Shown: positions 10,101 to 31,787 of the stretch, piece by piece
Position numbering within the stretch: position 1 is the stretch's first letter
How the letters are laid out: each line of letters begins with the position of its first letter
Source of the DNA: Tubulanus polymorphus
Lineage: Eukaryota; Animalia; Nemertea
Direction: 5' to 3'
NCBI RefSeq assembly: GCF_964204645.1
Contig: NC_134030.1
Span: 3,762,778-3,826,777, forward strand
DNA length: 64,000 bases
Translations under genes and position numbers: made by a program
Notes under the pieces: model-generated
The model's database searches: none
The model's input: only the letters and a program-made list of their open reading frames with translations
What the model was told of the DNA's origin: nothing

Positions 10101-13100
10101 CCCAGAAAGAGACAGAGAGTGTGAAACATTGTGTCTTTTAATTAACTCTCGACTTAATTAATTCTTGATAAACAATTTTGCTTCAAATCTAAATTTGTAT
10201 TGAGTGGGTTTTTTAACTTGATATCTCAACAAATTCGCCATCTATCAGTGTAGAGTCATACTAAAAGTAAATAACACAAGATAGAGAGCACGACCGTTAA
10301 GCCCAACGCACACGGCAAAACATTTGTTCCGCCGAAACAGAAAACGTTTTTTGCTCGTGAAAAACGTTTTTAAGTTTGGCGTTTTGTTTTGCCTCCCCCG
10401 CACACGGCATAACAAAAAAACATTGAAAACGTTTTTTCACGAGGAAAAAACATTTTTTCGGTGCCATGTGCGTTGGGCTTAACGATTAGGGCTCCAGTTC
10501 TAGATACGTACCGAAGATTTTCCGAATATCGTAGAATTCACGGAAGAAAGCGCTGTCCGTGAACAAATTGTTGAACATCGTGTCGACGTTTATATGGAAT
10601 ATTTCATCTATCATTGTCAGATGTAAATGATCATGACCCGCGCACGTCACTTCCCCTTAAATGAGACATTTAAATTAAACTGAAAGTCTACTGAAGTCAG
10701 TTATAAGGCGACGATAAGAGAAAAATCCACAATATTGAAAAAAATGCTATGAACCGTATTAAAAAACGGAAAAATAATTGTTACCATTACAACTGTTTTT
10801 GGTAATGAAGCAGTTATGAAAATTGCTCACTGCAATTTACTTGAAACTATGGGAACTTTCATAGTACTCCATTTCTTTGAGTTTTTCTCTTAAATGACAA
10901 TACTGACACTGATATAATACTTACCCTCGCTACAATCTGTATTATCGCTCACATCAGTTGGAATATCCGCGTCCGGAGGAGCCGAATTCATATTCTTATC
11001 GACGCTCTTTTTCTGATTGTTGTCGTTGATTTTCGTCGGCCCGGCATCGACGTCGCAGCTTTCGCCGTCGTGAAGCTCTTCGACACCTGATGGCACCATC
11101 GAATCGTTGTCTTTTCCGTCGACAAATGAATCGTTTTCCTCATTTTGAAACTGATCCTAAAAAACGAAATTTACATCGCAATTAGAACACACTGCGTTTC
11201 AAGGTACTCTTGTAACTCTTAGTACCACATTCTGCGATGAATCATTGAAAAGCAGTTTCGAAAATCTAACAAAATCCCGTCCACCACAATTTGAGGGTTC
11301 CAATACTAGTAACCATTAGTTTAATTTAATCGACACATAAGTGTATGAATTAGCTGATGAATTTTTCAATATATCCGTAATAAGCATAACTGCACGGCTT
11401 GCTGAGGACTTCACATCTACCAGTTGACGTGTTAAGTCTAAACTAAAACTCAAAACCTGAATTTTACAATTAATCTTCCTAATCCAATTCTACGATCGAT
11501 GAAGAAACTTCAGAAAAAATGATATGAACCTGTCATAGTTAGGAGCTGCTGATATACAGTACTAATCCATGAAAAATATAACAAAAGTGATAGTTCACAA
11601 TTGATGACTAATAATTAAAGATTATTGCACCTGATGATGGCTGCAACAGTCAAAACATTGTGACTTCAATAAACTCTTTAATTCTTAGTCGCCAATTGTG
11701 GGATTTTGCTTTCACCTCCTTTCATCTTTTTATCCTTCCTCTCGGCCTTCTCGTCACTGAACGAAAACCATCGGAAGAAACTAGAGGATAATTGTTGACA
11801 ACGCACAGCTGCTTATAGATTATATAGACAGCGTTACACGTAATGTATACGTGCGTATGAGAGGATAATAATAACACATATAAATCAATTAATCGATCTT
11901 GAAGGGTGGCTTATTATTGTTACACACGTCGTCTATGTCTACCCGGTAACGTTAACCCTTTTAAAAATATCTAAACGTGGCGAACTTCACTCGAATAGCC
12001 GCGAGCACACGAAATATATTCGCCACGCCACCGCCGCACGCAGGCGAGCGCACGCGTGTAGAGTCTGCATTCGATACTGAACTAACCAATTAAAATATGT
12101 ATTCGAACACGCAACTTCTAATTCTCAGACCCGATGGAATTATATTTTCAAAGATCAATTCTTCTGGCTATATTATATATTAACAGCTGGTGAAACTTAT
12201 TGAGGTTTGATTATTATCAGTCAAAATGACAAGCATCCAATAACGATTGGTATGTTCGAGGTTAACAAAGCACTCGAAAACAAACACCTTTTTCACTTCT
12301 TTTTATGGCGTATGTGACATATGGATGTTTGTTATTTCTTAATGCATTCCAAAAGCTAGGGTAGGGAGAGCATGGGCCCACAACTGCTAACGATACTGGT
12401 TCTTTAAAAAACCTCCACTCTGAAAAAATGGATCTAAAATGGCTGCTTGGAATTCATACCTTTTCGTCGGACACATTCCACTGACAGTGATTCAATCGAC
12501 TTTTTAACGGACCCCAGATCAAATTCAAGGCCGGAGATGATGAACTTCTACGCTCGAGCAGGACTGAATTGAAAGTAGTTGAACTCGTAGATTTGTGAAC
12601 GCGACGAAATGTGCTGGGCGAAGATGGAAAACATGTCAATAACGCTTTACGCTTCGTGCTGACCCCGTTCATTTTTTGGCGCCGCGATTTCAATTTTGGT
12701 CCGTCAGAAAAATGCTGGTGTTTGTCGTCGACATCTAGCCATCTATTGTCAAAAGTGATTCCCGACGCACTCCGCATCATGATTTTCGATATCAGACTTA
12801 TCGAAAATCACAGTTGTTTCGACTCTGAAGTCTTGATCAGTTAAAAGAACTACTTCTACTACAACAATTCGATAAAAATAGTACTTCACAAATTATTCTT
12901 TCGTCCCCACAGCAATTGAAACAATGACAAATCATCAGAATGAACCATCTACAAACATTGCATATTCCTATTCCAAGTCACAGAACACTCTTAGCTCAAC
13001 ACAACGCTCAGTATCCTCAACATCCCAAAAAGCTGTCTTTCTCTCTCATCTGCCAAATGCTGAGTGTCAATTTCATTACCAAGCGATATTCCTGAATCAT

Positions 13101-16100
13101 GCAGCTGACTGGGGCAATGTGAGTGTCGTATATGATGAGAAAACTTAATGAATATACAACACGCGACAACCGGGCAAACCGACAAATCTAGGATTATCTT
13201 CTATACATGCGTATGGTAACTGTTACCGGAAGTAATCAGGATTTCACGAGATTCGACATCAAAATTAAAACTGCACCATAACCGCTCGCTGGGTATCTTT
13301 ATTACTGTTGTTGTTAATCCAATCGTGAATCTATAACAATAAACATTTAAGCCGCGTTCACACAACGTTATTAAGAATGTTTTCAATGAAGTCCGTTCTA
13401 CATAGCATTCGCACTAGAGATATGTTTGTTCTAAATTGGTCCATTCCATTTTTTAAACTTTTCAAAATTTTAAGGCGCCCCATTTCTCTGTGCGCGAATA
13501 GAAACTTTAGTCAATCACTGTGTTGTGTCAAACTGGACCAGTGACAATAGTTGATATCATATGCGTGAATGCACAGCATTGATTCGGTCCATTCTATATT
13601 GGTCCATTCCAAATAAGATTGTACATACTAGCGATAGTGGCTTCAGTCAAAACTGTAATAAACTCCGACTGCAGAACTCCAGTAATACACCAACAGTTCC
13701 AGTAATGCACTGACTGATCCAGTAACAGCTCCAATAATGCACTGACCAACTGCTCCAGTAATACGCCAACAGCTCCAGTAACACACAGACCCTCCAGTAA
13801 CTTTGGTTGATTCATTCACATTGCTTACATTCAATTCATGTTTATGTACTGTCCATAAGATGAATAAATAAACACATCCAATAATTCAAACTAAAGTATC
13901 GACTAACACCAACACTGTTCCATCAAACAAGCGTCGCTCCTAACACCTGTTAATTAATTTGTTATAACTTACGTCCATCTAATCGTATAATGAAACTTTT
14001 CATAAAAATTATGCAAATTATCCGGCGAGAATCAAACGAGTGTCCGACATGAAGAACCTGATTAAGTGAACTCGCGATGACTTCTTCACCGTGTCTAAAC
14101 ACGGCAGTTAGAAACTGAGCCTCGCGTTACCACCGGAGATAATGGTTGTGGGAACTAACGTATGCATAAGTCGCAAACAAACCGATAAATACCCAACGAT
14201 ATAGATAAATTAGTCGACCATTCACAAGGCAATTAATAATGCATCGAGTCTTAGTTTCTGAGTATTACACACTATATATATATATATGTACACTAGAGAT
14301 ACCACATAACATGAATGTCAACGAAATATTGCCCGCTAATTACTGTTTAAGATGGTCAAGAAATCATAACAATAAAGCTGTGTTCACACTGCATCATTTA
14401 GAATGTTCTGAATTCAGTCCGACATTTAACCTAACCTATTACTCCTTAAACCGCCTGCAACCTTTCTTCACATGGTACACAAAAATGGTTTCAGTGGGAT
14501 TCAAACCCATTAGTTTAGGATAAGCTAGACATCGAGGATGTCAAAATTCTTCCTATCTGAAATTCTCGAATATTTAGGAATTCTCGAGTATTTAGAATAT
14601 GAACATGACAGAACTGAGCACTCACTTATACCTTATCCAAGTAAGTCTAGATGATTTTTTTTTTTGGGGAGGGGAGTTGCAAGAGGTCAGAATTTTGGTG
14701 GCCCACCTGGTAAAATCTTATATCGTATAAACGCAGTGTGTTTATGACAGTGCGGACGAAGCTTAATACATGTGGTGGAAGTGGCAACAACATACTGAAA
14801 ATACTGTTTCGATTACTAGATGAAGAAAAGAGTGATATCTCTTCTTTAGCTATAAGATCACTTCCTCATTCTGTATCTATAACTGTTATTCGCAGATCTG
14901 TCATATAATCTGCCATGCAATTATAACAAACTTTCCAGCCGATATTCTTATATCACACGATTGCGCCCGACCTGACAAATTCTGTGTGTCATTCGCTACA
15001 CAGATAGGATGATAATAACAGCTCGATGCAATCCACAGTATATTCAATGAACTCACTGAGGAGAGAGGGAGAGAGTGAGGGATTAGCAATGTCATAATCT
15101 GGACTCAATGAATGAGGTTTCACGCAATATGCATAAACATGTAAGGTGATATTGTGGCCACCATTAGCAAATTGCTTCGGTGCCAAATTGCAAACCGACA
15201 TAACGGAACATAGGCTTTTTATTGAGAAATTCACTTAAAACTAGACACCAGTTAATTAAGAGATCAAAAAATCCTCCAAAATGCACCCACAATACTATAT
15301 TATTAATGACCTTACCTTTTCACCAGCAATTTGCATATTTGAATATAGACAAACTGTCAATACGCACACATCATAGACACCTAGACAGTGCTACATACGC
15401 GTGACTAATCTGATCTAAACACTAAATATATACAGCAGAACTGACCGTCTTCTTCACAATATAGAGCAAATGACCGGGCAATGTCCAAATAAGTTAAACA
15501 TATGGTGAACTTCCTATAGAACTTTCTATGCTGTAAAATGATCTACGTACTAGTCAGCACTAATTCAAAGTAATTCAAATGATGGGCTACAGGCTCTCTA
15601 CTAATCAAAACAAATTCCTTTATGACCCAACCGATTCGATTTCGGATAGTTTTGTGGTTCCCTATTTACCGCATATGCTATTTGGCCAAGTTTCTCATGA
15701 AAGGTAACATGGCTGATTACTACGAAGAACCATTTCATAGATCATAGATGTAAGGCTATAGCAGGCAATGCAAAATCTAAAATCAGAAAATTATCCTTAG
15801 GGTACAGACACAAGAACGGGACAAACAATTTCACAATAATCAGTGCATCCTGCCGTGAATGATGAACAAAGTTAAAAAAAAACAAAGAAAACTTTTCAAC
15901 AGCGAGGATGGCCTGAGTTTTTCAGTTTATCGATCTACCCATGTACCGGTACATACCTACACTTGTACCAGTGCATACAAAATCACAAGTGTTAGACAAG
16001 TACTACTACATATATAAGCATAAAGCAGCATATTGGCTCGGATCTACTTAAAATAAAACAATAACTCAATCAATTATTGATCATTGTCTAACTCAATTAA

Positions 16101-19100
16101 TCAATAGTGAAAGCAGTATTAAAGGGATATGCATAGATCTGAATTCCTTAAATCTTTTTCTTGATAAACGAATCATCTATGGCTGACTAAACCGATTGAT
16201 GAACTTATTTTTGCAGTAGTTTAGTTTGAAATAGTGTGAATGAATGAGGCAAATATTATGAAAACTATTAAGTCAGTAAGTGCATGTACTCGAATCCATG
16301 GGCCAGTTTCATAGACTAGAGATCATCGACACCTGACGATGATCTCTAGTGTGAGATCGAGACGTCATGTTCTTATATTTCAAATTGTTTCAATAAATAA
16401 ATTCTCGATTTTAGATTTCTTTTAATTTATAAATAGTGGGTTTTTATCTTATAGGCTTTAACTTAAACCCCTTTAGGCCAAGCTATCTGAATATGATCTT
16501 AATCCTAAGACTGGCCTTTATAGTAGTTGCAAGATTGGTTATAGATTAGACCGCTGTAAAATCTAAACCCTGTCCATCGAAATGGCCTCTGGATATTTAT
16601 TCTTGGGTCATCATCAGTTTTCTGCACTCTTTTTAGACTTAGCATTGTTTTTTGCATATCCCTTCATGAGTAATAATGAAAAAAAACCAAAAGCGCACTA
16701 AATGCATGATATAGATATGAAAAAAAGAACAAAATACAAAAATATATGCGGATTTAAGAAGAAAACATCGTATAAATATATGTATAGAAAATAACCTTTG
16801 TAGAGACATCAACCGGCTTATGAGGGGAGGCTGACGATGTGTCCAGTGTGTCGTGTTGGTGATGGTGTGTTGCTTCATCGCAAGAGGGCGCCTTGGTGAT
16901 ATTAGTCTGCAAATGAAGTGACCCATTGACGAAAAACCATTTAACTTACTGTGTTACATACATACATGTATTACGTACAGAAATACACATTTCGCCGGGC
17001 GTTTGCGGTGTTACGTGTTCCAGAGAGGTATACAGAAAAAGCTCAATGATTTAAACCCATAGATTCTGTCCGGTTAAATAGTTAAGTTTATATATTTAGA
17101 TAAAGTTATGTGAAGTTATATCAAACATCATTCAAAATATTGATATTCCGAAAGGAAGAACAGAGCATTCTTGACCATTATTCCGACATGCTCATACATG
17201 TTGAGGGCGGATCTAGGAAAATATCAAAGGGGTGTGCAGACACTAATTCTCACAGGAGGGTTTGGTATTCCTTGCCCAAAAAAATGTAAAATGATTAAAG
17301 CTTTTTAGAATTTTTAGGCTGACATTTTGTAGGACTCGGAAAAAGGGGGAGCGCGTGCCATGGACACTTCCTAGATCTACCCTTATGTACATAGACTTTC
17401 ACCGCTGACGAATTTTGTGCCAAGCGCAGAACCCAGCATACAAAACGCAGTCTCATAGGTAAATTACATATAAGTCCAACAAGCCCGACCAACCAATGTG
17501 GCTATAGTGAAAAGAATAGGTGGTTAGCTGTAGCAGTGAACTTACCAGGCTAGAATCTGTACCCGGCGATACTTGATTATCAGAGATCTTATCTTCACTC
17601 GATGGTGGAATGTAGTCATCGTCGCTCGAAGTCAGACCTAACTCTTCTCCGTAGCTGTAGTGAACCCACTGCCACAGTTCAGATGGAGACATCGGCTACA
17701 AACAATAACAACTATTTCTTTATTCGGTTTTCTATGAGTTAATGATATATTCATGACATTTAATTATATTTTGGCCCTTATCAACAAATCTTATGACCTG
17801 TAGTTAAAATGTTTGATACTCGGAGACACTTTTTTATTGGTTAGGTAAGTAAACAGGATTCTTACAGATCAGAAAATCAAAATTCCCAGATAACTGCCTG
17901 ACCCTACAAAAAATTTCCTGATCAAATAAGATATCCTCAGTAGGGTCTGTTCCTTATCAAAAGATTGCTTGTGCCACTTGTCACTAGCAAGAACAATAAG
18001 ACACCAAGTGTTTACATACAAGTTAACCCTTTCAGTGCTGGCTGGCGATAATAACTTCAAATTTTTTGAAAAATTCCACCCCAGTGCATTGAATAATATT
18101 GTATACCCCTAACGTAGCTGCGGTGTATAGGTAGTTACTAATATTTCAAAATGTTTGACAGGTGCTGCCATCTTTCACTAGTTATAAAAACTTATTACTA
18201 ATTACATCAATACACAGTGGTGCAGTGTACTGACTAAGTCCATCACCGATTTGCACCGCACTGCGGTGAAGGTGCACTGGAAGGGTTAAGTCAAAAGACA
18301 TTCAGCAAATCACAGCGTATCTAATTATTACCTGTTCTAACAGTGCGTTTTGCCACACTCTGAACAGCATCAAATACGTTTTGTCTCGAGCTCCGAACGA
18401 CGTGAAGAATAATTTCTCGTTGTTGTTTTTACAAATTTGTATCGCGTTTGGAATAACTCGCGCCGTTTTCTCTTTCGTCATCGACGTGATGTCTTTTAAA
18501 CGAATCGTAATCTACAACATAGAAATAAACGTTCTTTATAATCGTGCACATACTCGTCTCATCGCGCTAAATACCGAAACTTACCACAGTCTCCCATCGG
18601 AAGATGTTGGCATAAAAACAAAGCCAATTCTGCGTTATGTACAAACGACCGTGGACGAGAATATCTTTTTGTAAAGCGCAAGAATAATCTGAAATTGATT
18701 AATAACAAGCATTTAAATCTTGCAGGAATCCTATATAACTTAACCATCAAATGTGCTCATAGTTTGGTATTTCTTAGAGGAATATTTAGGATTCATAATA
18801 GATGTATATTCACTGGGATGATGGAGCTGGGGTGGCTGTGAAAGGGATAAAAATTTTGCGGATGATATTTTTCTGAAGGTTATTCCAAAACCTTTGCAAG
18901 GCCTGTTCCAATACCTATAAAATGCTGTGCAGGATAACTATGATCTTAAATAGCCCCAAAGTATTCGAAATGTTTCCATTTAGAAAAATACATATAGATA
19001 TAGAACTTGCTTCCATTGGCCCCGATTCAGGACACAGACAATAGCAGTAAAAGGACCTAAGGGGCTAACACATTTATATTTGATCACAGCAATGTTCTCC

Positions 19101-22100
19101 ACAAGGGCCAGATGTTTATATCCAACTCACTGAATATCAGCTGTCCATTAGAATATCTACTTTCCCTCTACATAGACGCAAGTTGATTTCCCTTTACGAT
19201 TACTACTTTCTAAAGTGGCACATAGCAGCAGATTGAAGCATAACTATCAATATCTTTGAAGCTTTGCTTCTTAATCGGCCACAATTCTTTCTATACGCTA
19301 AAGAATGAATTAAATGCGTTTACAGACATTGCTCGGTGAAGCTTACCCACGACCAGTCTTTCTTCATTCGGAATATCTTTGGAGATCTTCTTGAAATCTT
19401 CACATTTTGACTTGTACGTAGGACTGAGAACCTGAACAGCGCAAAAATTCAGTTAATCTAATACGCACGAATCCAACCATTAGTTCAGCTTAATGTATAT
19501 ACATTCACTGCGCAAATAGTGACGAAATACGGCAAATATAGTTAGTAATTTCTAATAGACACTTACATTATACCAGTAGGAAGATTTTCGTTTTTTGTCG
19601 TTACCGCTAACGTTTAGACGTTTCTCCGAGCCGACCGATTTAGAGAGCTCTCCGTTGGTCAGGTCAATCGACCGGTCACAGATGCTCAGATTACTACTAT
19701 CACAGCTATCGACTGAATCAGTTTTCAACCGACCGCCGCCTTTCACCGCGAGATGGGATCCTTCATCGTTCGAATCGAGGCCATTCGATGCCAAACTGAA
19801 ATTCAAACGAGAAATTCAAACTATATAATTGTTGTTTTTCAACAGTTTTTTCACAATCTTTGCGATTGTTCAAGACTAACAGCAGTTTTAAGCTGTTAAA
19901 AGAAGCAAAACCCACAAGAAACACATATGGCGTACACTTCTGTCCATTCAGGGTATTTGCTTGAAAAAGGTATCATGAAATATTCTGGGGTCATTTGTTA
20001 CCAGTGGATATTTGACAGTTCAAACTCCATAGTTATTATAGTATTGATTAGGACCAAATTCCACAGTTGTGAGGATATGATTGAAAATGAAATTCTCACT
20101 TAATGAACTCGAACTCACAACTTCGAGCAAGTGACCCCTGCCCAAAATGGTGGAACCATATACCCGTATGTTAGCTGTTATTCTGATAGTGTGTTTTCGC
20201 TTCTACTATAGTTCTACTCTGTTTGTCTTTACATACATAGCATCCAATATCAGGGAAGAATTACTCTTCATTTATCATACAGGGTAAAATATACCTGGGT
20301 TAAGGGGCACAATATAAAAGCATAGGCCACATCATATATGTGTATGAATATCTAGAGCATTGGGGTTAATATACAAGTGTTAGTAATATAAAAGATAAAG
20401 CCAAATATAGAAAAAAAAATATGTTAGATAATAGTAAAGGTAAGACACACAACAATTAGTCATAAAGACACTTAAAAACAACTTTGATTCGAATTAGGAA
20501 GAAAACAAAAATCAAGAATACGGAATGAATCTACAGCTTTCCATGATTTTTAATTCAGCGCTGAACATATGATTCATTCACTAAATTCATGATTACAAAA
20601 CATGAATTGACAATTCTTTTCGAATCGGGGTCTCATACCTATACTCCTCTCCAGAGCTGCAGATTTCATATAAGAATCATATCGAATTGATTAATAATTG
20701 ATCAATTAGTGTTTTTTAATTAATGGGTAGGGTTGGCTAGTGCATACTGTGAGATTAGTGTAAAACTGACACATACGTCATCTGAATTTTCAAGTCAGCT
20801 GTCACACATAAACCAAGCTATATAAACATACAGCAACATGCCCCTCAATAACATACAGAGAGATAGCAGTAGCCATTCGAAATTCTCCTTCATAGGACCA
20901 TCTCCCCTAAATCTTGAACTATACATATTTTAGTAAAAGCACAGCCCAGATAGAATAACTGATATTCAAAAATGGGAGACGTTCATTAAGCACCAACGCA
21001 TCACCCATGAACACAATTTCAAGCATAACTTACCCAAGGATACATTATAGGAGAGATGGCTGATTTCAGTACGTAAAATTGTACACTATGAATGTTTCTG
21101 ATGTATTGAAAAATTTTCCATTATCAAAACTGATAACAAAATTCATATGAAACAGAACCCGCTCGATTCGGATAATTTGGAATTGATGAAATCCATCCAG
21201 TTTAGAGAAATCTGGATTAAACATCACATTCTACATACATTTACATAAAGGTATACATATATCTGGATTAGATCAAAATCCAGATTACGCAGATCTGAAT
21301 AAGCCATTTCAGTGCTGACAAATTGATACCTGAAAGCGCTGGCAATAATTTGAAAATTCCAAAAAATTGCACCCAGTGTGTTGAACAACTTAGTGCGTCT
21401 ACACCACGGCGCGGTGTATTGTTAGTTACTAATATTTCACAATGTTTCGCTAGGTGTTACCATCATCCATTAGAGATTAATACTATTTACTAATAACATT
21501 GATGCCGTGTACTAGCGAAGTCAAGCACCGATTTATACACTGCACTGCCATGCAGACGCACTGAAAAGATTCTAACTGGGTTTGATATGAACATTTCGAA
21601 ACTGAATAATTGAGATCATTCATATCTGGACCGAACGAAGAAAGGTTAATGGGACCATACCACCAGTCAGGACGGATAGAGTATATCCCTGGCAAGCGAG
21701 GATACCAATGAGTCTTACCTATAAGTATCCGGAGCCTCTTTAGCTTTCACCGATTCAGTGGCCGCGTTATAACGGAATGTAAGATGAGCCGGTAAACTAG
21801 CGCGACGAGGAACTGAACCTTTCGCACCGGATCCCGATTTTACTGTTAATCGAGGAGATGAATTCAATTCACCGACTTCATCATCGACGACTTCTACATC
21901 AGTAGCTGCAACTTCCATTTTCAGATCAGCCAGGCTCCCTTCCTCAGTAATCACATCCGTTTTAGCCGTAGGAGTCGTCACCGTATCAGCATCGATAAAC
22001 GACTTCTCATTCTCGTATTCGCCGCTAGGTGGCGTGTTTCTCAATTCAGCGGGCGGTTTTTCGATGCTACGAAAAGCGCTTAGCGGCTCATCCTTATCCG

Positions 22101-25100
22101 ACGCAACGGGACTAGACCTACTGAAATCTTGTAATAACGGGGACTGCCGATGGGGAGCGTGTTTTACATTCACAGTACTAGACTGAATATTAATAGTTTT
22201 CGGGGATTCGAGACTGTTTTCAAATTCTGCGTGTTCCGTCGTCTTAATTGGTTCGAATGCAGATTCACCGGCTCGCGCTTCAGAAATTGTGGGCGACCCC
22301 TGGTGGACGATATGATCGTCGCCGTTGCTGCATTCATTACTGTTCGTCGAGGAGACAGAGTTGTTATCGCTGTTACGTCTAAATTTACTACGGATACTAG
22401 TCTGGAAACGTCTAGAAATCAACAGTGAATACAACATGAAAATACACAACGCAAAACAACGAAATAATAAACAACAATCAAGTGAAAAACAAACTTCAAT
22501 ATACATTGACTTTTTCACCATTGATAAAACAAAGAATCCGTGATATGATGATAATACAAAGAGAATCCCAAAAACGAAATAAATTAAGTTCCAAAATTAT
22601 TCCTTGAGGTAGTTGTTTATTCTATGTTTCCAGTATATTATAATAATCATTTTCAGGAATACCGAACTGTATTCCTGAAGATGACTATTAGAATATAGTG
22701 GAAACGTTGAATGGTTTAAAGAAAAGTAGAAAATTTGATTGAAAATATATCGTTATGATAAATGGATATTGAAGTCTATGTGTATTTAAAAAGTATAGAA
22801 CGAAGTGAACTTGAAAAAACAAATCTAAAATGACTAAAAGGTTCAAAATACGACACGGCCGACGATTAGGTTCAAAGTCCTCATGACTGTTATTGATATT
22901 GAAATAGGAATAAAGCAAATGTTACCCGAAAACGGCCATATCAAGTGCTGTCCAATTACTAAATCCAATATCTCAATAAAACTTAGCTGAAATGTTTTGA
23001 TCGAAAAGCAAAAAATTCTATGAAATAGCACCCGTCCCGCTGACAATAGTCTAATGCATGCAGAAATGTTCATATATAATCATGAAAACTAGATTCATTT
23101 CCTTTTTGTTATTAATTGGGTCAGACATACCAGGAACTTATTTCTACCCCTGGTACATGGAGTCTCGTGGGTTTCCCTAATACCGGGGCTGGAGAAATGT
23201 ACAATAGCCTTTTCAAATATCATGAATACCAGTCACTGGACGTGTTCATATGAGTCGTTTTGCGCCTCAATTCAAGACAAAATTTTCCCCCAGAGCAGAC
23301 CCTTTCTTAACTGAAAACCATAAATCGATAGTGTAAACTTACACTATATTAGTAACTGACTAGTGATAAATCTGTCTTCCAAGACTTATTCTTACTTACT
23401 GTACTAGTACTTGACTAGTGATAAAACTGTCTTTCCAAGACATATTCTTACTTACTGTACTAGTACTTGACTAGTGATAAAACTGTCTTTCCAAGACATA
23501 TTCTTACTTACTGTACTAGTACTTGACTAGTGATAAAACTGTCTTTCCAAGACATATTCTTACTTACTGTACTAGTACTTGACTAGTGATAAAACTGTCT
23601 TTCCAAGACATATTCTATTCCGCGTAGAAAATGTAACCCATGATGATTTTCCGGTACGAATTGAACACAATATCCTCTTGAATTACTGCTCGAAAAAATT
23701 ATCATTGAGATCATAATCTGATAGCAGACATTATCATCATCGTCATCATCATCATCACCGGTCTAATTTGTATGTATTCCTGTGTGATGTATATTGATTG
23801 TTCACTGTATGGAGTAACGATGGCACAGCTTGTGTATGAAGAATGACAACCAACTCTTTCAATCGTCAAATCCTGCACGTCAAGAGCCCAGTTATATTAT
23901 AAAATAGCTCAAATTTTTATCTCACATGATTGGACGTTCCGTTCTACATATCATATTCTATACAGGTACATAGATAGAAAATTGTGCTTAATAAACTTTG
24001 GACTTTCGAATTCGATAATAAACTCACCACAAATTCTCAAGTCAGGCCATTCGTAAATCACACCACTATTTTTGGGTGAACGATTAAATCAAATCGTTTT
24101 ATGAATTCAAAAGCCAGTCAGCAATACAGTGCTGTTAGATCTGTACGCAGGAGGCCATTATATTCATCAAAAATAATGGTGAACTTGAAAATAATTACCG
24201 GTACTAAGGTCTCATGGAAAAGAGGATTTATGACGATGCCCTGAAGGAGTAATTCAGTGATATTGCATTGAATACAGAAAATACAATAGACAACAGTTGA
24301 AAAATGATCTAGAAAGGTATTTATTGATTGGTGTAATGAAAAACTTTTAATAACTGATGCGCACTGATATAAGCAGTTCTACTACTTAATAAAATGTGAA
24401 ATAGGAAAAACTATCCCTTGCCTCATTGGCATTGTTAATGTCTTCGCAGTGAGAACAAAAAGGCTTTTCATATGATATAGGCCTAATAAGGGAATAAGGG
24501 ATGTTTGTAATAATCTGTGGTATATTTTTATAGGTGTATCCCATATCTTTATCATCCAACAAAAAAAAACTTTTGAAAAAGTATTTTGCCCAGGTCATCA
24601 AACTAGTCGATTTTGAACCTTTTTCGTCGGTAACATCTGTGAACATTTATTTCTACAATCGATCTGCGTGATAAGAAAAACATACACAGTGGTCTTCAAA
24701 ATAGGATCTATGTAGGTCTTAAACAAGCCTACATTGATTACATTGTATACAGATTGAATTCAAGCACACACCTGTGTAGGCTTTAAAATGAAATATATTC
24801 AATATTTCAATATAGATTACGATTCTATTCAAAATCATCTAATCTAAAGAGTAATGTTCAAAAACCTTGTTGAATTCTATTGTTTTCAACACAAATTTCA
24901 TTAAAAGAACTTTAAATGTTTTGTACCAAATACTTAAGGTTTTCAACACAAATAAATTTCATTAAAAGAACTTTCAATGTTTCGTAACCAAATACTAAAG
25001 GTTTTACTTTTTACTTTGTTATGAATTAAACAAGGTTTTCCCTATTTCATATAATAAATAATTATGAAAATTTTGCATCTACAGTCGCACAAGTTCTGAT

Positions 25101-26653
25101 TGAGCTCCTTTCTCTCTATCTCGTGTGACTGTTAGGTGTCGAGTGCAACATCAGGGTGACACAAAAACACAGTTGCTAGAAGGCGTACAATATAATTACC
25201 TTTGTTCATCGCGGAGCGTTGTTGTGGAAGAACTTTCATTACTGTTTTGATTGAAGTTAGACGACGTTTGAGAAGCTTGAATTGCGATCTGAACTGATTC
25301 TTCACTTGAAGTCAGAGCCGCTTCCATTTTTCTGGAAATAGACACGAAACTCATCAGTAAAGGGTCTTTATACAGGCTCCCTACAGATCAGTCAATCCTG
25401 GGTATAAGGAGTTTTAAGGAAAAAATTACAAATTTTGAGAAAGCGGCCGCATCAATCCCAATTACAGTAGACTGGCAAATTAGTACTGTTTATCTCGGTA
25501 CACCTGTAATTTGGTGGTTTTGTCTTTTTTTGATGTATTTAAAAAACCTTTCATTGCGGGTTTGACACTCCATTCTAAGGCCAGACAAATTATCAAAAAT
25601 CTCTTGAAGAAATTGATGCATTATGGAACTATTGCTGGATGGACAGGTGTTTGTGAGGGACGGTTGATGAAACATGTTAACCCTTTCAGTGCATCTACAC
25701 CACAGTGCTGGTGGACTTAGCTAGTACACGGCAGTGTATGGTAATTAGTATTTATCTCTATTGAAAGATGGCAGCACCTGTCCACAGGCACTCGCTGATG
25801 GGATTGGGTTATCGCGATAATGTATCTTCCTTGGTCTTGGTTATTCTATGACTATATTACTGAAAGACGTTTCGACAAATTTGATAGTTTCACACAATCG
25901 ATGTAATAATAGGATATATCAGCGTCATAACACAAGTTTATGTCACATAAGATGAAAGTTTTAATTTTACATTTGATAAACGAGATTTTGTTATAAGCAT
26001 TTTGTGATGTCGCCATGTGGAGCCAGCGGCCAATGTCTTTTTAAACGCTTTCAGTAGCAAGACGTTTTTTTCTGATTATTGCAGAATAACCACTCAAAAC
26101 ACAGATACATTATCAATAACCCGAGGATCTATACCCTAAGCCCATCAGTGAGTGCCTGTGATATTTAATTCAATTCAATATAACTCTTTATTATACTGTT
26201 ATATCCATTACATATGGAGGTGTACAGAGAGTATAGATAGAATGTAAAATATTATTATCTAACAATACATCGCTCCGTGGTGTAGACACACTATAATGGC
26301 ATGCCTGTTATTCGATGCTTGGGGTAGAATTCAAATAATCTCCAGCACTTTCAGGTATTTACTAAACAGCACTGAAAAAAGGGTTAAATAGATAAAGATA
26401 ATTTCAATATTTACTTGTTGAAGACGATTGCGAAACTGTTATTATTCATCAATAATGCAGACGGGCTGCTGCTGTTTCCGACGACGGTCGATCCAGCCGG
26501 AATAATCGGTAAAATACTCGGCACAACGACTGAATCTATTTGACTTGTAGGTGAATTCCGCGTCCTATTATTGAGTTGATGTTGTCTGAGATCTCCTCCC
26601 GCTGCTGCTGCTGCTGGTGTCTGAGATGATTGTGGTAATTCTGCTTCAGACAT
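4163..26653 (-). CDS. GRAMD1: GRAM domain-containing protein 1 (Aster; GRAMD1B-like ER-PM sterol transporter)
   Basis: Phase-consistent exons: 26653-26415, 25331-25200, 22411-21719, 19795-19567, 19431-19347, 18688-18585, 18511-18332, 17695-17546, (16906-16796), 11156-10925, 10655-10512, 9935-9811, 8952-8760, 6357-6304, 5858-5618, 5180-5064, 4977-4857, 4261-4163. GRAM domain: VLSPTYKSKCEDF..DYSCALQKDILVHGRLYITQNWLCFYANIFRWET..KEKTARVIPNAIQI..FFTSFGARDKTYLMLFRVWQNAL. VASt domain: IPYGDSF..NRYCITRV..WGMVK. TM: LLVLILFNGLLYYKLWTLE. Luminal helix: EEWLALLKTQQYLHDNELERWK. Confidence 0.95.
5242..5352. mobile_element. Tourist/Harbinger-like MITE
   Basis: TIR gggg(a)tcattcatttattac ... gtaataaatgaatgacccc. 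Confidence 0.7.
7801..7953. mobile_element. Tc1/mariner-like MITE (TA-CAGT ends)
   Basis: tacagtaaacctagcctta ... gcgagattaactgta. Similar TA-CAGT-ended elements at ~8353-8500 and ~28334-28659. Confidence 0.55.
9297..9567. mobile_element. Harbinger-like MITE, TAA TSD, with internal ggcccg/gccaaatttggc palindromes
   Basis: taa-agccgccatcacac ... gtgtgatcgtggct-taa. A right-end fragment of the same family lies at ~32905-32987. Confidence 0.8.
10300..10479. mobile_element. MITE with ~20 bp TIR at a TTAA/TWA site
   Basis: ttaagcccaacgcacacggca ... tgccatgtgcgttgggcttaa. Confidence 0.85.
11628..11662 (+). ncRNA. Degenerate minimal type I hammerhead ribozyme motif inside an inverted-repeat element
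   Basis: CAC-CTGATGA-T-GGCTG caa CAGTC-(A)AAAC(A)TT-GTG. Stems I and II pair; two G>A changes in the core. Confidence 0.6.
13677..13800. repeat. Degenerate minisatellite (ctccagtaat... units of ~20-24 bp)
   Basis: ctccagtaa/tccagtaa/ctccaataa recur about 7 times; this explains the spurious ORFs here. Confidence 0.7.
16329..16370 (+). ncRNA. Minimal type I hammerhead ribozyme motif (one core substitution), Penelope type
   Basis: ACAC-CTGACGA-T-GATCTC tagtgt GAGATC-GAGAC-GTC-ATGT: perfect 6 bp stem II and GUC triplet; GAAA is GAGA. Confidence 0.65.
18027..18285. mobile_element. piggyBac-type MITE (TTAA TSD, CCCTT TIR)
   Basis: ttaa-ccctttcagtgc ... gcactggaaggg-ttaa. Homologous copies at ~21300-21576 and 25681-26383. 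Confidence 0.85.
21300..21576. mobile_element. Degenerate copy of the piggyBac-type MITE
   Basis: Shares aaaaattgcacccagtg, gtagttactaatatttca and caccgattt with 18027-18285; ends are eroded. Confidence 0.7.
22671..22713 (+). ncRNA. Minimal type I hammerhead ribozyme motif (intact CUGANGA/GAAA core), right arm of a palindrome
   Basis: ATTC-CTGAAGA-T-GACTAT tagaat ATAGT(G)-GAAAC-GTT-GAAT. Stem I is ATTC/GAAT; stem III is the self-complementary ACGT. Confidence 0.7.
23358..23617. repeat. 56 bp minisatellite, ~4.6 nearly identical copies
   Basis: gactagtgataaaactgtctttccaagacatattcttacttactgtactagtactt starts at 23358, 23413, 23469, 23525 and 23581. Confidence 0.95.
24882..25005. repeat. ~60 bp tandem duplication
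   Basis: ttttcaacacaaatttcattaaaagaacttt...ccaaatact.aaggtttt occurs twice. Confidence 0.8.
25681..26383. mobile_element. piggyBac-type MITE (inverted copy) interrupted by a nested TIR element
   Basis: ttaa-ccctttcagtgc ... gcactgaaaaaaggg-ttaa. Nested element at 25783-26160 with TIR cacaggcactcgctgatggg / cccatcagtgagtgcctgtg. Confidence 0.85.
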
Positions 26654-27273
26654 GACTTTCTACAATTGACAGCTTTCAATCTCTTCTACAAATCAATTCG
26701 TAAATCTTCATTTTATGAATAAGAGTTTCGTTGAGTTAATTATTACCAATATTCAACGACTTATCAACTGATTTGCAGCTGTCTCTCGCTCGAATTCGAA
26801 TGAAAACTGCGGTCTGCGGAAACAAAAAAAAATCTGGTCCGGTCGACAAAATGATCGCATTGAATGAGGTGAAATAGCGGCGTCTTATCCTTATCTATCT
26901 CGACACAGAACTGTCTAAAATAATGGACTTAATCGATAACGACATAGAAATGAACCAGTCAAAACGAGCGAACTAAAGTGTTTCAATGTCGGAGCGAGAC
27001 TTGACAAGCCGCCATTTTGTTACAGCTGGTCGCAGCGCTGCTTCGTCTAACGGAATGCTCCGAAGCTATTAAGGGTGACTCCCAAAAAAAATCCAAACAA
27101 CGTGTACTAATAAAGTTGAAGTGAATTGAACTCGTGGCGGGTTCTCGAGGTCGTGTGGAATCAGGAAGTGAAGGCAAATTCAATTAAACTTTATTTACCG
27201 CTGCGAAATTTATTTGCTATCTAACATATTGTCGGCTTGACAGATACCTAAGATTGAAATTTTGGTATCTAAA
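26654..27273. promoter_or_regulatory. Bidirectional promoter region of GRAMD1 and CDK5RAP3
   Basis: Divergent ATGs ~620 bp apart. CpG-rich, with a YY1-type gccgccattttg (~27008) and an ETS-type ggaagtg (~27164). Confidence 0.65.
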
Positions 27274-30200
27274 ATGGAGGTAAATTCTAAGCAATGACAA
27301 GAGACCAGGGAAAAACTGTATGAAAATCCTTTCAGTCTCAAAAACGGCTTTACTACAATTAGGGAACTGCTTCAAAAATGCAACAACAAAAAAATTTCAA
27401 TTTTTTTCAATTTCATAGAAAAATATGACACCGTTTTTACTGATCACAAAAGCTAATGTTTGAAGACGTGATGATTTCAGGTTGACAATTTGCCAATTGA
27501 TATCCATTACAACAAATTGCTTGGTAAGTTGTAACATCAATAAATGTCCCTCTTTCGGTTATTGTGTTTGTTAACATCGTACTACGATTCATAGATAGGA
27601 GAGAGAGGTAGATAAACAATTATTCATTCCGCTCTTTTGGTTGTAGATTGGTTGATTAACCGACGACATTGTCTGCATCAATGGCAGGCATCAGCAATAA
27701 CAATCAGAGAGAAAATCAATAACGCCATCCAAGATATGCCTGCAGTTGAAGAGATTACAAAACTTCTGCAAGGCACATGTAAGTTTATTTTCATTATGAA
27801 ATCTATCAAAACATGACATCATTTGTGATGAAGATCGCCGACCTGAGCCAGTTGATTTGTAATTACACAGCTGTGGTGTCTGAGAAATGATTTGTGTCAT
27901 ATCTTTTTCTTTTGTTTTACAGATATCAACTATTTCCATTGTTTGCGTATTGTGGAAATACTGAAAGACACCGAAGCAAACACGAAAAATATCTTCGGTC
28001 GTTATTCGTCTCAACGAATGAAGGTACAATAGCTATTTATATCATCTCTATTTTTCATTATCATGAAATTCTACCTATACTCACTCCATGTTTTAACAGG
28101 ATTGGAATGAAATTGTTCAGTTATACGAAAAAGATGGCATTTACCTAGGTATGTATAAAAATCACATCATAGACTGTAGGTCGTAGAGGTTACAATCGGT
28201 TGTGATCATTTTTGAAATGTTTGTGTTCAGCTGAAGTTGCGCAGTTGCTGACAAGAAATGTCAATTATGAGATACCTTCCCTGAAAAAACAGATTGCCAA
28301 ATGCAAGCAGACACACGATGTAAGTAACATGATTACAATAAACCCTGTTTACCCCAGAGTCGATTGCTTCTGATTACATTAAGCGTGCCCAAGACAATAT
28401 GTTATTTGTTTTCTTACCTCAATACGCTGGATCCATCATTTAACATCTTTTGTTTATTCCGAATATTGTTAAAAAACTTATCTTGTATTGTAGTTTAACT
28501 ACAATACAAGATAATAATTCATTTTTCATTTAATAAATGAAAAATTAATTATTATCATTAAACCTCGTAACATCAACCCTGCTTCAACTGCCCCAGAATT
28601 TCGACCCACCTCCGAAAGGAGTTATTTGTCGTGTGAGATGCAAGAGGGAGTCTACTGTAGTAAGAAATCACAATAATATCTTGATTCGTGCGTTTCAGGA
28701 GACAATTAAAAAGGAAGCTGAATATGTCACTTTAGAAAATGAATTCAAACAGAAGTATCATGCTGCTTGTAAACAAATGGATATTCCGGTAAGTACATAA
28801 TGATATATTAGATCCTGGGTTCGTATCCTAGTTGTATTACAACTAAATGTATTTAAATTTCATAGATTGATTATGTTATCTCTTTATTCTAAGGGCGTTC
28901 GCATTAAAACTGAGTTGATGGCATTATTAAATGATCTACCGTCTGAATTAGACAACGTTGTCAAGTCTACGTCAAATCTTTCATCAGCTGTTGAATATTG
29001 TCGTTCATTCGTTCAGTTTATAAGTGGCAGGTATAAACTCAATAGATAAATCCATTTCCTCACGTAGATATAAGTTTCTGTACCAATATAGAGATAACCA
29101 CACTCAAACGTGGTGAACGGATAATAAGATAAAAACCCACTATCTACAGATTAAAAGAATTTAAAAACAAGAATTTATTAATTCAAGCAATCTCAAATAT
29201 ATAGAATACACAACGTTTCGATCTCACCCTAGAGATCATTGTCCATTGTCTGGGGTGAGATCGAAACGTTGTGTATTCTATATATTTTAGATTGCTTGAA
29301 TTAATAAATTCTTGTTTTTAAATTCTTTTAATCTGTAGATAGTGGGTTTTTATCGTATTTTCTTTATCAATACTTGAGAATTTTCTGTAATTACATGGAA
29401 AACTCAGGGGATATCTAAATGGGCAAAAAGAGTGTCCACCCTGTCCCTGTACTAGGGATTGCGTGAACGGTCGCAGCTATAACCAGTTAACTGCCAGCTT
29501 TGCGAAAAAAATGATTTCTCTTCCAGTTCAAATCATCAGTCGTCGTCATTTAGAATGTTGGATCACTTAATGACGAAAGGAAACACAACAATTTATGAAT
29601 GGAAGAACGGCGAGGCTCCTCGACGCGTTGAAGAAACACCACTTGATATTGAATTTGAAGACGAAGAAGAGAAATCTGACCAGGTAACAAACTCATCGAC
29701 ACAATATCAACAATCAGAGTTTTCACCATAGAATTTTTCTCATTTATTCGTATTATCTCAGATTGATTGGGGAACAGAAGATTTGGATCTTGGAAATCTA
29801 GAATCAGCTCTGGACAACATCACATTTGAAGAGGTGATTTATTTTGATATTGATGCGCTTACAATTCAATGATGTCTATTGAAGATATTGCATAAATATA
29901 ATACTTGTATGTTATATAAGGATAATTGATTTTATATGTTAGGGTGCTATTGATTTCGGAGATGGAGATGGAGGTGAAATAGACTGGGGTGATGTTGAAA
30001 GTGTTGATATCCAAGTAGAAGATGGTGGCGACACTATTGACATAGCTGTAGAAGGTAATATAATATACGACAGTATTTATGTAACTGAAACTTCATTAGG
30101 TCTATAGATTGATTCACAATAAAGACAGCTTAAAAAATTGTATCTACCGGTGAGGCCTTTTTCAGATAAGCCAGAAATATTTTAAAATGTCAATGATCGA

Positions 30201-31787
30201 TATGGTCTGTTTTTTTCGTGCAGAAGAACCAGGTGTTGCAAAAGGAAATGATGCCCTAAGTATATTAGACGATACTGAAACCAGAAATCTGTTTCTTGAT
30301 GATCTGTACGAGGTCGGTGAAAAGTAAATTCGTAAATTCAATCTCAAATTCTACTGTCAAATTAGAAATTAATGTATATTTGAAATTTTTTAGTTGCAAG
30401 CATTTTTCCATCAACGATTAGATGATTTAAACGGTCACACGGACACAATTTGTGACATCATGTTTCAGTCAGCGCCGTCAGAATTACAGCTCGACGTGTC
30501 CGCCGTTGAAAAGATGTTAGCTCGAATCGATGATGTCTTACAGTTGATAAATGCAACAAAAATGCAACATATGTTAACTATACGCAGTTTCCCGAGGTAA
30601 GGAATATAATCATTATTTACTGTTGACTTTTTTCCGGAAAATATGAATTCTTGATTTTTTTTAACACCCGCTAAGTGTCACGTAGGGCATTATAAGCGGG
30701 TTCGATGTTTCTTTTTCCCAATAGGGGAGAGACCAGAGAAGAACCTTCGACCAAGAAACTCTGTTGCCACCAGGGTTTGAATCCATAAACCCTGGATCGA
30801 CGAGACCAGTGACCGGTGGCTTAAACCACTCGGCCACTGCACCTCACTTAGATTCTTGAAGATTAAATGGGCTAGGTGTAACAGATTAAGAAAAAAGAAA
30901 TTTTTTTTCTTATGAACTTTTCATCAAATTTCAGATACGTTCATCGGTTAGCGGAGAACATGAAACAGCATATGTCACAAGCGGAAAAATATCACCAGAT
31001 GCAAAAACTAATGGTCGAGAAACGTGATGAAATGAGAGAGGAAGAAAAGCGCATGGAACCGAAAGTTAAACTCATTAGAAATAAAACGTTGGAATTAAAA
31101 AAACAGGTGCTGTTTAGACAAAAAAAAGTTGATACCCTGTTTCTCATTTCTGCTAAGGTTAAAAGTTGACCTGGTCGGCCACCTTTCTATCCTGTACTTA
31201 ACTTTCTTTTAAATCGTGATCAAGCCAACCATAAGTGACCCAGCAGTTATAGAAATGAACTGATTACAAATTTTATTGCTGTTTACAAAATTACATGGTC
31301 GATTATGAGAAACAAGTTAGTTACTGGCATTGTCTGTGAAGTCAACTAAAGATCCCAATACAACTGTTTGAATCGGAGAGCATTTCATGTAAACTATTTT
31401 TTTTGGCTTACATTTCAATGCATTGATAGTGTTTAGATAAAATACTCCTCTTATTCAGACTGTTGTTTTGGGATCTTTTGAGGACTCTAAAGACAATAAC
31501 TAACCACAAAATACGATATAATCCATCTTCACAACATGCATCAACATCTTACAATCTTTCATGTTACCTAGCATTATTTGACCTTGGAGTAATCATTTGA
31601 TAAATTAGACAAATGATTACTCCAAGATTGGACAAAGACGGTATGGATCAATGTACGTATTACAATACGCCATGCGTAGCTTTGATGTCTTAAAACTGAT
31701 TTCTTTTACTTTCAGATCGAGTCAGAAATTTCGAAAAAGTATAAAAACCGACCCGTAAACATCATGGGAGAAATAAACGTGATTTGA
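27274..31787 (+). CDS. CDK5RAP3: CDK5 regulatory subunit-associated protein 3 (C53; UFM1 E3 adaptor / ER-phagy receptor)
   Basis: Exons: 27274-27279, 27481-27523, 27647-27778, 27923-28023, 28100-28148, 28231-28319, 28699-28788, 28894-29030, 29527-29683, 29762-29833, 29943-30054, 30224-30312, 30394-30596, 30935-31106, 31716-31787. Protein: MEVDNLPIDIHYNKLLDWLINRRHC..REKINNAIQDMP..YINYFHC..KNIFGRYSSQRMKDW..RNVNYEIPSLKKQ..IDWG..ISKKYKNRPVNIMGEIN. Confidence 0.96.
29124..29358. repeat. Near-perfect palindrome, ~105 bp arms (inverted dimer of the hammerhead-bearing element)
   Basis: Left arm gataaaaacccactatctacagattaaaagaat...caacgtttcgatctcaccc; right arm gggtgagatcgaaacgttg...atagtgggtttttatc; spacer ~22 bp. 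Confidence 0.92.
30655..30845 (-). mobile_element. tRNA-derived SINE
   Basis: Minus strand GAGGTGCAGTGGCCGAGTGGTTTAAG (A box) ... GGATTCAAACCC (B box), then a non-tRNA body and an A-rich tail. Confidence 0.7.
31139..31315. repeat. Interspersed repeat (second copy at ~47836-47998)
   Basis: Shared tttctgct..aaaagttgacctgg..aaccataa..gaccc.gcagt..aattttattgc.gttt.caaaat..gagaaacaa. Short inverted termini tgtttctcat/atgagaaaca. Confidence 0.75.

Follow-up and report, generated by a model that had tools for sequence, protein, structure and literature searches.

Four sites in a 64-kb stretch of DNA (the whole of the sequence analysed, called the window hereafter) carry short palindromic units that resemble hammerhead ribozymes. 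This raises the question of where these units come from and of whether the strand of their cores matters to the genes that host them. An earlier note had read them as ORF-less elements, Penelope-derived or retrozyme-like, of at least three subfamilies, whose recognisable cores would lie only antisense to the host pre-mRNA. The four elements very probably are decayed, ORF-less 3'-terminal pieces of Penelope-like elements (PLEs) that belong to three lineages and were inserted by an RT/GIY-YIG enzyme, mostly as head-to-head pairs. They do not show a new ribozyme, a regulator of host genes or an orientation-dependent selection.

Hammerhead motifs in the window

The elements, with the evidence on which each rests, are the following:

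11596..11703, plus strand: decayed family C2 PLE tail unit (inverted repeat, covariance model match, alignment)
16315..16452, plus strand: family A unit of the UAGUGU-loop subfamily (sequence, inverted repeat, covariance model match)
22600..22715, both strands: family B head-to-head pair (inverted repeat, covariance model matches)
29088..29365, both strands: family A head-to-head pair in a CDK5RAP3 intron (inverted repeat, covariance model match)

Inverted repeats had been claimed at all four sites and are indeed found there, with arms of 17–114 nt and 86–96% identity:

11596-11621/11675-11700: 26 nt, 88%
16315-16331/16334-16350: 17 nt, 94%
22619-22662/22669-22712: 44 nt, 86%
29120-29233/29249-29362: 114-nt arms, 96%

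A covariance model built from genome copies, among which 22668-22715(+) is a training row and 16326-16373(+) is not, was run over the whole 64-kb window. It retrieves exactly five arms at E<1e-3, all at the sites already pointed out, and nothing else below E=1:

11624-11666, plus strand: 22.8 bits, E 5.7e-4
16326-16373, plus strand: 47.4 bits, E 8e-11
22616-22663, minus strand: 24.1 bits
22668-22715, plus strand: 58.7 bits (training row)
29205-29245, minus strand: 38.6 bits

Within the window, a simple pattern does not exceed chance (2 matches for 1.0 expected, a number reached in 25 of 100 shuffles); the window alone therefore cannot decide, and a genome search is needed. Rfam models run over 10-31 kb detect no hammerhead family at gathering score or even at E<=10, because these copies lack the helix III hairpin.

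The three motifs of identical form announced by the earlier note reduce to one. The core CUGANGA...GAAA + GUH keeps every base, among the arms of the window, only at 22675-22708(+), which reads CUGAAGA...GAAAC-GUU; the motif at 16.33 kb has GAGAC and the one at 11.63 kb AAAAC-AUU.

The 11.6-kb unit consists of a hammerhead remnant, 11624-11666(+), followed by ~37 nt of tail; in front of the remnant, the end of the tail recurs as an inverted 26-nt copy (11596-11621). Alignment with family C2 copies (L083, L084, L089 and L100) reveals a 5-nt deletion that shortens loop II and two substitutions, G12->A and G16.2->A. A BLAST search of the genome found no close copies of this element and one partial locus only. 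A chance origin of the motif was rejected, since family C2 emerged from the generic pattern and homology is apparent in the alignment; a 7-nt deletion considered for this copy was replaced, after MAFFT alignment, by the 5-nt loop deletion plus point changes.

The 16.3-kb unit carries a hammerhead at 16326-16373(+) with A13->G (GAGAC for GAAAC) and a tail that extends as far as the short terminus (GGGTTTTTATC+TTAT). At 16315-16331, the first bases of the unit recur as an inverted 17-nt fragment, a type of junction also present in L044 and L030.

In the 22.6-kb pair, the longer arm (minus strand, 22600-22663) has the core CUGAAAA, i.e. G8->A, with GAAAC-AUA among other changes. The shorter arm (plus strand, 22668-22715) stops just past helix I and has an intact core, with C11.1 changed to G, so that G.G replaces the G10.1-C11.1 pair. 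This right arm is 96–98% identical to the units of 69-nt arrays, and the pair has 329 first-look candidates genome-wide.

The 29.2-kb element was described as a core-less inverted dimer, which holds: CUGANGA is missing from its long arm (minus strand, 29088-29245), whose 3' terminus is complete, and its short arm (plus strand, 29249-29365) is 5'-truncated, the break lying in loop II. The pair is flanked by what probably is an imperfect target duplication of 8 bp (ACCAATAT / ATCAATAC).

Every arm (5/5) is thus defective at a conserved position, and the window copies are therefore probably inert. As for coding capacity, a frame of chance length, 22688-22918(-), overlaps the 22.6-kb pair, another, 16639-16926(-), lies outside the elements, and Pfam gives no match for the window ORFs tested.

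Families and helix covariation across the genome

The four elements fall into three families: A (16.3 and 29.2 kb), B (22.6 kb) and C2 (11.6 kb). The earlier note had called for a genome-wide scan. Searching with the loose motif CUGANGA-U-N12-24-CGAAAC-GUH, which imposes no stem requirement, yields 3,631 matches (1837 on plus, 1794 on minus) versus 2 in the reversed control. The core-plus-helix II pattern of family A has 623 genome matches and that of family B 1,214, the control giving 0 in both cases.

The expected covariation is found as well, helices I and II covarying between families over 48 distinct copies. In these copies, paired cells make up 84.1%, versus 26–45% when the partners are slid, and the covariation score is reached by none of 500 shuffles. 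Helix II is 95.5% paired, with both sides changing in five of its six pairs (GAUCUC/GAGAUC, GACUAU/AUAGUC, GGCUAA/UUAGCC, GGCUGU/ACAGCC). In helix I, both sides change in four of the five pairs (ACAC/GUGU, AUUC/GAAU, CCAC/GUGG). The unit is organized as a helix I of 4–5 bp, CUGANGA, one unpaired U (invariant at alignment column 15), a helix II of 6–7 bp and GAAAC joined directly to GUH; the 16-33 pair of the alignment (G10.1-C11.1) is G-C in 43/48 copies. Given this direct GAAAC-GUH junction, found in all families, helix III is predicted to form only between two copies, via ACGU, and predicted cofolds of two hammerhead copies bring a small gain only.

Some family B copies form tandem arrays with one hammerhead per 69-nt unit (8.3 copies at 95% identity in L075, 5.4 copies in L079), and a 95-nt palindromic unit is arrayed too (L076). 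These arrays recall retrozymes, whose hammerhead RNAs would be cut from multimers, circularised and recopied by the PLE enzyme, the window copies being dead members of a family of strict, non-autonomous retrozymes. Most family A arms, which start at a discrete point without a PLE body, would also fit this scheme, and it is argued in a 2026 preprint that the retrozymes of animals derive from PLEs and are non-autonomous. However, rolling-circle copying predicts a head-to-tail and not a head-to-head order, whereas each of the four window elements is either a single unit or an inverted pair and none is tandem; moreover, the lizard PLE inserts mainly uncleaved RNA (PMC11167929). A strict retrozyme origin of the window copies thus appears rather unlikely.

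Relationship with Penelope-like elements

Full-length relatives had been proposed as a check, and an ORF with RT and GIY-YIG domains does lie beside a hammerhead elsewhere in the genome for each family, which thus resides in the end region of a PLE: A in L059, B in L080 and C2 in L103. In L080, the 802-aa ORF matches RVT_1 and GIY-YIG above cut-off and lies between two family B hammerheads, identical to each other and separated by 2,857 nt. In L103, a C2 hammerhead follows the 669-aa RT+GIY-YIG ORF and another, inverted, precedes it. In L059, the ORF located directly upstream of the family A hammerhead matches RVT_1 and, weakly, GIY-YIG, the latter below the Pfam cut-off (18.6 versus 22.6 bits); the end of this ORF has >1,000 first-look candidates in the genome, often in adjacent inverted pairs. 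Another locus, L082, is downstream of an 817-aa open frame.

The motif form given by the earlier note, with an extra U after CUGANGA and a loop-less palindromic helix III, is that of the minimal hammerhead (min-HHR) of the pLTRs of metazoan PLEs (Cervera & de la Peña 2014, PMC4209133). Besides the definition of this ribozyme, that paper describes its unpaired base, the G10.1-C11.1 pair, the palindrome at 15.2-16.2 and the occurrence of dual motifs on opposite strands. The families found here share with it the CUGANGA + GAAA core, the absence of helix III and loop 3 with palindromic 15.2-16.2 (ACGU; positions 15.1-16.1), the single unpaired base between A9 and G10.1 together with the G10.1-C11.1 pair, a long helix II with a short helix I (4–5 bp), many covarying families in one genome, adjacency to RT+GIY-YIG ORFs and close opposite-strand dual motifs. 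Differences are a helix II of 6–7 bp here for 7–8 bp in the published elements, a host that appears to belong to another animal group, and mutations at conserved positions in the window copies. Altogether, the adjacency of the families to PLE ORFs, the insertion signature of family A (see below) and the min-HHR match support the reading of these elements as Penelope-derived, devoid of coding sequence and of three subfamilies.

More distant likenesses exist. Metazoan non-LTR retrozymes (Cervera & de la Peña 2020, PMC7229834; Li et al. 2026 preprint) are likewise short non-coding repeats with type I hammerheads and a link to PLEs, and the family B tandem arrays found elsewhere in the genome resemble them; the window elements differ in being inverted or single rather than tandem and in carrying a hammerhead without helix III. 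Canonical type I hammerheads, as modelled by Rfam Hammerhead_1 (RF00163), have the same catalytic core and type I topology (open helix I) but possess the helix III hairpin missing here.

As end pieces of PLEs with an already described minimal hammerhead, the elements are real but ordinary, and the value of the result is modest. It adds one more animal genome whose retrotransposon tails carry Penelope-type minimal hammerheads by the thousand, in several covarying lineages.

Orientation relative to host genes

No GRAMD1 domain was detected by Pfam in ten larger ORFs of the 12-34 kb region, the exons being located by six-frame family scans:

8758..18695, minus strand: located part of a GRAMD1-like gene (six-frame Pfam scans, above cut-off)
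8758-9003 and 9793-9942, minus strand: VASt exons (PF16016) of this gene
18344-18514 and 18579-18695, minus strand: GRAM exons (PF02893) of this gene
27640..31109, plus strand: CDK5RAP3, seven exon matches (PF05600 six-frame scan)

The plus-strand cores had been placed inside the minus-strand GRAMD1 gene. This is true at 11.6 and 16.3 kb, between the VASt and GRAM exons, whereas the 22.6-kb pair lies upstream of the last located exon. The 29.2-kb element is intronic in CDK5RAP3, between exons 28690-29061 and 29516-29854.

The proposal that selection acts on orientation holds that sense-strand intronic cores cut the pre-mRNA and are purged while antisense cores remain. The three best-scoring arms of the window are all on the plus strand, two of them in introns of the minus-strand gene, and a vertebrate study reports a depletion of retrozymes from introns and exons. 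Nevertheless, n is 2–3, and finding three arms out of three on the same strand has a probability of 0.25 by chance (two-sided). Furthermore, sense and antisense arms are alike defective (all five), and the antisense arm in CDK5RAP3 has lost its core too, which runs counter to the proposal. Whole-genome strand counts are symmetric, as expected, and are uninformative about genes. Published min-HHRs cleave poorly in vitro, and only as dimers (PMC4209133). Selection against sense cores is thus quite improbable, and the suggestion of the earlier note is not supported. More generally, many retroelements show an antisense bias in introns, so that such a bias alone would not implicate cleavage.

Insertion anatomy and possible mechanisms

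Family A provides the insertion signature. Target duplications of 9–13 bp, unrelated in sequence, surround the whole pair in a small sample of six clear cases (L002, L007, L009, L011, L015, L026). Within family A pairs, one arm ends ~123 nt past the hammerhead and the other ~83–90 nt, i.e. there are two discrete 3' ends ~35–40 nt apart, the stretch between them being an optional "tail". Thirty arms were chosen by position on one contig (C1). Of these, 17 are paired with an inverted partner whose inner end varies (5'-truncated partners), nine are bordered by unrelated DNA immediately 5' of helix I and four continue into the PLE body; in this sample, the outer ends of the inverted partners cluster at unit positions ~126 and ~160.

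These ends also bear on whether the elements are MITEs, other foldback DNA transposons or genes for hairpin or miRNA-like RNAs that merely resemble hammerheads. Near-perfect palindromes of 90–280 bp fold into long hairpins, the 29.2-kb pair reaching a predicted folding energy of -174 kcal/mol (z -26) and the 22.6-kb pair one of -48 kcal/mol (z -8.4), and Rfam miRNA precursors match at 29202-29280 and 22625-22708. However, these matches, which any hairpin would yield, are far under the gathering scores (49 versus 90 bits, 38 versus 100 bits). The arms are copies of PLE 3' ends, their outer ends are asymmetric with two discrete termini, the target duplications vary in length and sequence whereas a fixed length is expected from MITEs, and single non-palindromic units are common. 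Such an origin is extremely improbable. If transcribed, an inverted pair of PLE ends would fold into a long hairpin that may lock the ribozyme away.

The anatomy agrees with that of PLE insertions studied in vitro with a different element, a lizard PLE (Frangieh et al. 2024, PMC11167929). PLE insertions comprise partial copies in tandem or inverted order. In the lizard system, both target strands are cleaved and extended, uncleaved RNA is the main insertion substrate and the optional 30–40 bp tail is the stretch between two internal RT start sites (TPRT with internal initiation). Shared features are the two 3' ends ~35–40 nt apart and the variable target duplications, and the inverted partners found here are as expected from nicking and extension on both strands. 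The copies described here differ in that most are ORF-less and start exactly at helix I, and in that each pair, among those read, combines one long-end and one short-end arm. The genome offers a clean example of the two-ended tail and two-sided insertion recently shown in vitro for the lizard element.

We know of no earlier description of this long-end/short-end rule. Together with the sharp 5' boundary at helix I, it provides small clues to template choice and copying by PLEs.

The inverted pairs probably result from nicking and priming by the PLE enzyme on the two strands of the target (inferred from Frangieh et al. 2024, PMC11167929). Reverse transcription would begin at either of two internal sites, and each priming event would copy a short template RNA as far as helix I, where its 5' end would lie; the inserted pieces have decayed since.

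The arm that is truncated inside the hammerhead varies, being the full-3'-end arm in some pairs and the short arm in others, and some junctions hold just the first 12–17 nt of an inverted unit. Two-sided priming consequently also needs later junction deletions or fold-back synthesis. A simple snap-back model alone was not adopted for the inverted arm, the short arm holding more of the hammerhead in several pairs.

A more specific variant seems improbable: the ~165-nt unit from helix I to tail would be a template RNA of its own, a SINE-like mini-Penelope made separately, and not a random 5' truncation. Two such RNAs, which may be joined via helix III (ACGU) of their hammerheads, would be copied by a dimeric PLE enzyme from both nicked target strands, the long RT start site serving for one copy and the short one for the other. 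If this were true, the ribozyme motif would gain a structural role in template pairing, and the head-to-head pair, the commonest form in the sample read, would be accounted for. Fainter still is the additional suggestion that intact sense-strand cores would be purged from introns.

Most units begin exactly at helix I; hammerhead cleavage predicts a 5' end located after GUH, not before helix I.

Hammerhead motifs in the window and in the genome

In a window whose GC content ranges from 34 to 44%, the four small inverted repeats at 11.6, 16.3, 22.6 and 29.2 kb are present as the earlier note had described them. The note had also recognized three motifs of the form CUGANGA...GAAAC-GUH. The motif at 22675–22708 (plus strand) fits this form strictly; the two others deviate, since the 16.33-kb copy reads CUGACGA-U-GAUCUC-UAGUGU-GAGAUC-GAGAC-GUC (i.e. 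A13→G) and the 11.63-kb copy reads ...GGCUG-CAA-CAGUC-AAAAC-AUU. Inside the window, a simple hammerhead pattern is not found above chance (2 matches versus 1.0 expected), and Rfam, whether at the gathering score or at E ≤ 10, gives weak hits to miRNA-like hairpins but no hammerhead. Therefore, the window alone cannot settle whether the motifs are real.

The assembly searched comprises 268 Mb in 77 contigs (the window bears the internal handle G000:C6:3762778-3826777). Throughout this genome, the generic pattern CUGANGA-U-N12-24-CGAAAC-GUH, without any stem requirement, has 3,631 matches (1837 on the plus and 1794 on the minus strand), far more than the 2 found in the reversed control, and its search turned up additional helix II variants.

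The window copies belong to three families. For the palindrome at 29.2 kb, a first look at the genome yields at least 1,391 candidates; 40 of these were scored, and all of the 40 are full-length, with 82–93% identity. The 16.3-kb unit belongs to the same family (family A), whose intact core and helix II, CUGANGA-U-GAUCUC-N-GAGAUC-GARAC, match the genome 623 times versus 0 in the reversed control. The 22.6-kb element represents a second family (family B), with 329 candidates genome-wide and 1,214 matches of its core (control 0); its right arm is 96–98% identical to the units of tandem arrays. BLAST with the 11.6-kb motif found no family. Alignment of this motif to copies of a third hammerhead variant, C2, shows that its loop II has lost 5 nt and that it carries the substitutions G12→A and G16.2→A, plus C→U in helix II. 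The motif is an old family C2 copy rather than a chance match.

Covariation and covariance model

The hammerhead helices were assessed on an alignment (A1) of 48 distinct copies with 7-nt flanks, a non-random sample in which identical rows were counted once and family A is over-represented. In these copies, 84.1% of helix cells are paired versus 26–45% when the partners are slid. Helix II is paired at 95.5%, with five of its six pairs changing on both sides, as do four of the five pairs of helix I. The covariation score of the copies is matched by none of 500 shuffles. With filters off, the covariance model R1, derived from this alignment, was applied to the entire window. It matches five arms at E < 1e-3, every one at the sites of the earlier note, and nothing else at E < 1.

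Penelope-type genes adjoining the hammerheads

Hammerheads specific to families A, B and C2 each adjoin, somewhere in the genome, a Penelope-type ORF, reverse transcriptase and GIY-YIG sequences being found for all three (below the cut-off for the GIY-YIG of family A). At locus L080, an 802-aa ORF (RVT_1, E 5.8e-10; GIY-YIG, 25.6 bits for a cut-off of 22.6) is bracketed by two identical family B hammerheads in direct orientation, 2,857 nt apart. At L103, both domains score above cut-off in a 669-aa ORF, which is followed downstream by a C2 hammerhead; on its upstream side, one C2 hammerhead lies inverted and another, decayed, lies in direct orientation. At L059, a family A hammerhead lies about 80 nt downstream of the end of an ORF for RVT_1 and one for a weak GIY-YIG match. 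More than 1,000 genomic candidates match this ORF end, including one group with at least 90% identity and a second with 51–53% identity and open frames of up to 841 aa; its copies are often adjacent inverted pairs. L082, located downstream of one such open frame, has a further hammerhead variant, C1. The Penelope or retrozyme-like part of the first reading holds. Penelope-like elements (PLEs) with a GIY-YIG endonuclease are reported to be absent from mammals; the present genome carries thousands of them, and the contig is not taken to be human.

Anatomy of family A and a possible insertion mechanism

The 5' strand of helix I, (C)ACAC, opens the family A unit, which then runs through the 34-nt hammerhead into a tail. 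Among 30 intact family A arms of contig C1, classified in positional order, 17 are joined by an inverted partner that, at its inner end, is anything from complete to a few tens of nt, 9 have unrelated DNA immediately 5' of helix I and 4 run on into a PLE body. Junctions vary, some keeping only the first 12–17 nt of the inverted unit (e.g. 16315–16331 in the window). In family A pairs, one arm has the full terminus, about 123 nt past the hammerhead, and the other ends about 83–90 nt past it. The outer ends of inverted partners cluster around two positions in the unit, separated by about 35 nt. Each head-to-head pair read (L027, L038, L053 and others) has one long and one short 3' terminus. Whole head-to-head dimers are surrounded by a 9–13 bp duplication of unrelated target sequence (six pairs, a small sample).

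The minimal hammerheads of PLEs, as defined by Cervera & de la Peña 2014 (PMC4209133), lack helix III and loop 3 and have a short helix I, a long helix II with an unpaired base at its 5' end, a conserved G10.1-C11.1 pair and a palindromic 15.2-16.2. They occur in massive copy numbers as covarying families, include dual motifs on opposite strands 100–700 bp apart, and cleave poorly in vitro, only as dimers. Frangieh et al. 2024 (PMC11167929) showed that the enzyme of a lizard PLE cuts the two target strands and extends both, mainly uses uncleaved RNA and starts reverse transcription at two internal sites whose spacing corresponds to an optional genomic "tail" of 30–40 bp. The anatomy of family A is consistent with both descriptions, and the elements are a real and well-supported example of an already known kind. 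The pairs would most likely result from two-sided target-primed reverse transcription of a short tail RNA, and their long and short 3' ends may reflect the two start sites. No description of the rule of one long and one short terminus was found in either paper.

State and genomic context of the window copies

The arms in the window carry the following changes.

11624–11666, plus strand: G12→A, G16.2→A
16326–16373, plus strand: A13→G
22616–22663, minus strand: G8→A, G16.2→A, helix II change
22668–22715, plus strand: C11.1→G, a variant found elsewhere mainly in arrays
29205–29245, minus strand: CUGANGA lost
29.2-kb plus arm, plus strand: cut off within loop II

A family-conserved position is defective in every one of them. 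As RNA, the inverted pairs are predicted to fold into long hairpins (-174 kcal/mol, z -26, for the 29.2-kb pair; -48 kcal/mol, z -8.4, for the 22.6-kb pair), which would sequester any core. Because of these defects and core-hiding folds, the window copies are regarded as inert insertion remnants.

Six-frame family scans located exons of two host genes.

8758–9003 and 9793–9942, minus strand: VASt exons of a GRAMD1-like gene
18344–18514 and 18579–18695, minus strand: GRAM exons of the GRAMD1-like gene
27640–31109, plus strand: CDK5RAP3 exons

Given the minus-strand VASt and GRAM exons, the elements at 11.6 and 16.3 kb lie in introns of the GRAMD1-like gene, in antisense orientation. A CDK5RAP3 intron contains the pair at 29.2 kb, and the 22.6-kb pair lies between these two divergent genes, about 100 nt beyond a minus-strand ORF. 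This 268-aa open frame (21715–22521, minus strand), between the GRAM exons and the 22.6-kb element, has no Pfam match and may represent the GRAMD1-like gene's N-terminal exon. The hint of selection against sense intronic cores is not borne out: the two to three informative arms are all defective, and the antisense arm in CDK5RAP3 is broken too. The genome-wide symmetry of plus and minus motif counts carries no information on gene orientation.

Tandem arrays and other inverted repeats

Two loci, L075 (G000:C1:31400050-31400800) and L079 (G000:C2:31329950-31330400), are tandem arrays of a 69-nt unit. Each unit carries one family B minimal hammerhead, with C and G mixed at 11.1. Further arrays of this kind exist, and most of the arrays are within about 1 Mb of contig ends. 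At L076 (G000:C12:4086300-4087050), a head-to-head hammerhead pair, with one arm intact and the other broken (CAGAAGA, GAAACUU), forms a 95-nt unit present in 6.5 tandem copies, which indicates that a palindromic insertion was amplified as a satellite.

The window contains other features. A 227-aa ORF (33675–34358, plus strand) matches CD20-like (MS4A) weakly, at E 1.9e-4, short of the cut-off. At 10330–10463, a hairpin of about 105–130 nt gives no hammerhead signal and matches miRNA precursors on either strand at sub-threshold scores (MIR7504, 30.9 bits for a gathering score of 83); it is probably one more small inverted-repeat element within the GRAMD1-like gene. At 25783–26160, two nested inverted-repeat pairs (30-nt arms, 87%; 32-nt arms, 75%) around approximately 235–320 bp look like a small terminal-inverted-repeat element. 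Finally, two abutting palindromes with 1-nt centres (18-nt arms, 100%; 23-nt arms, 96%) occupy 28478–28556, part of an AT-rich stretch that lies between two exon matches of CDK5RAP3, 28227–28316 and 28690–29061.
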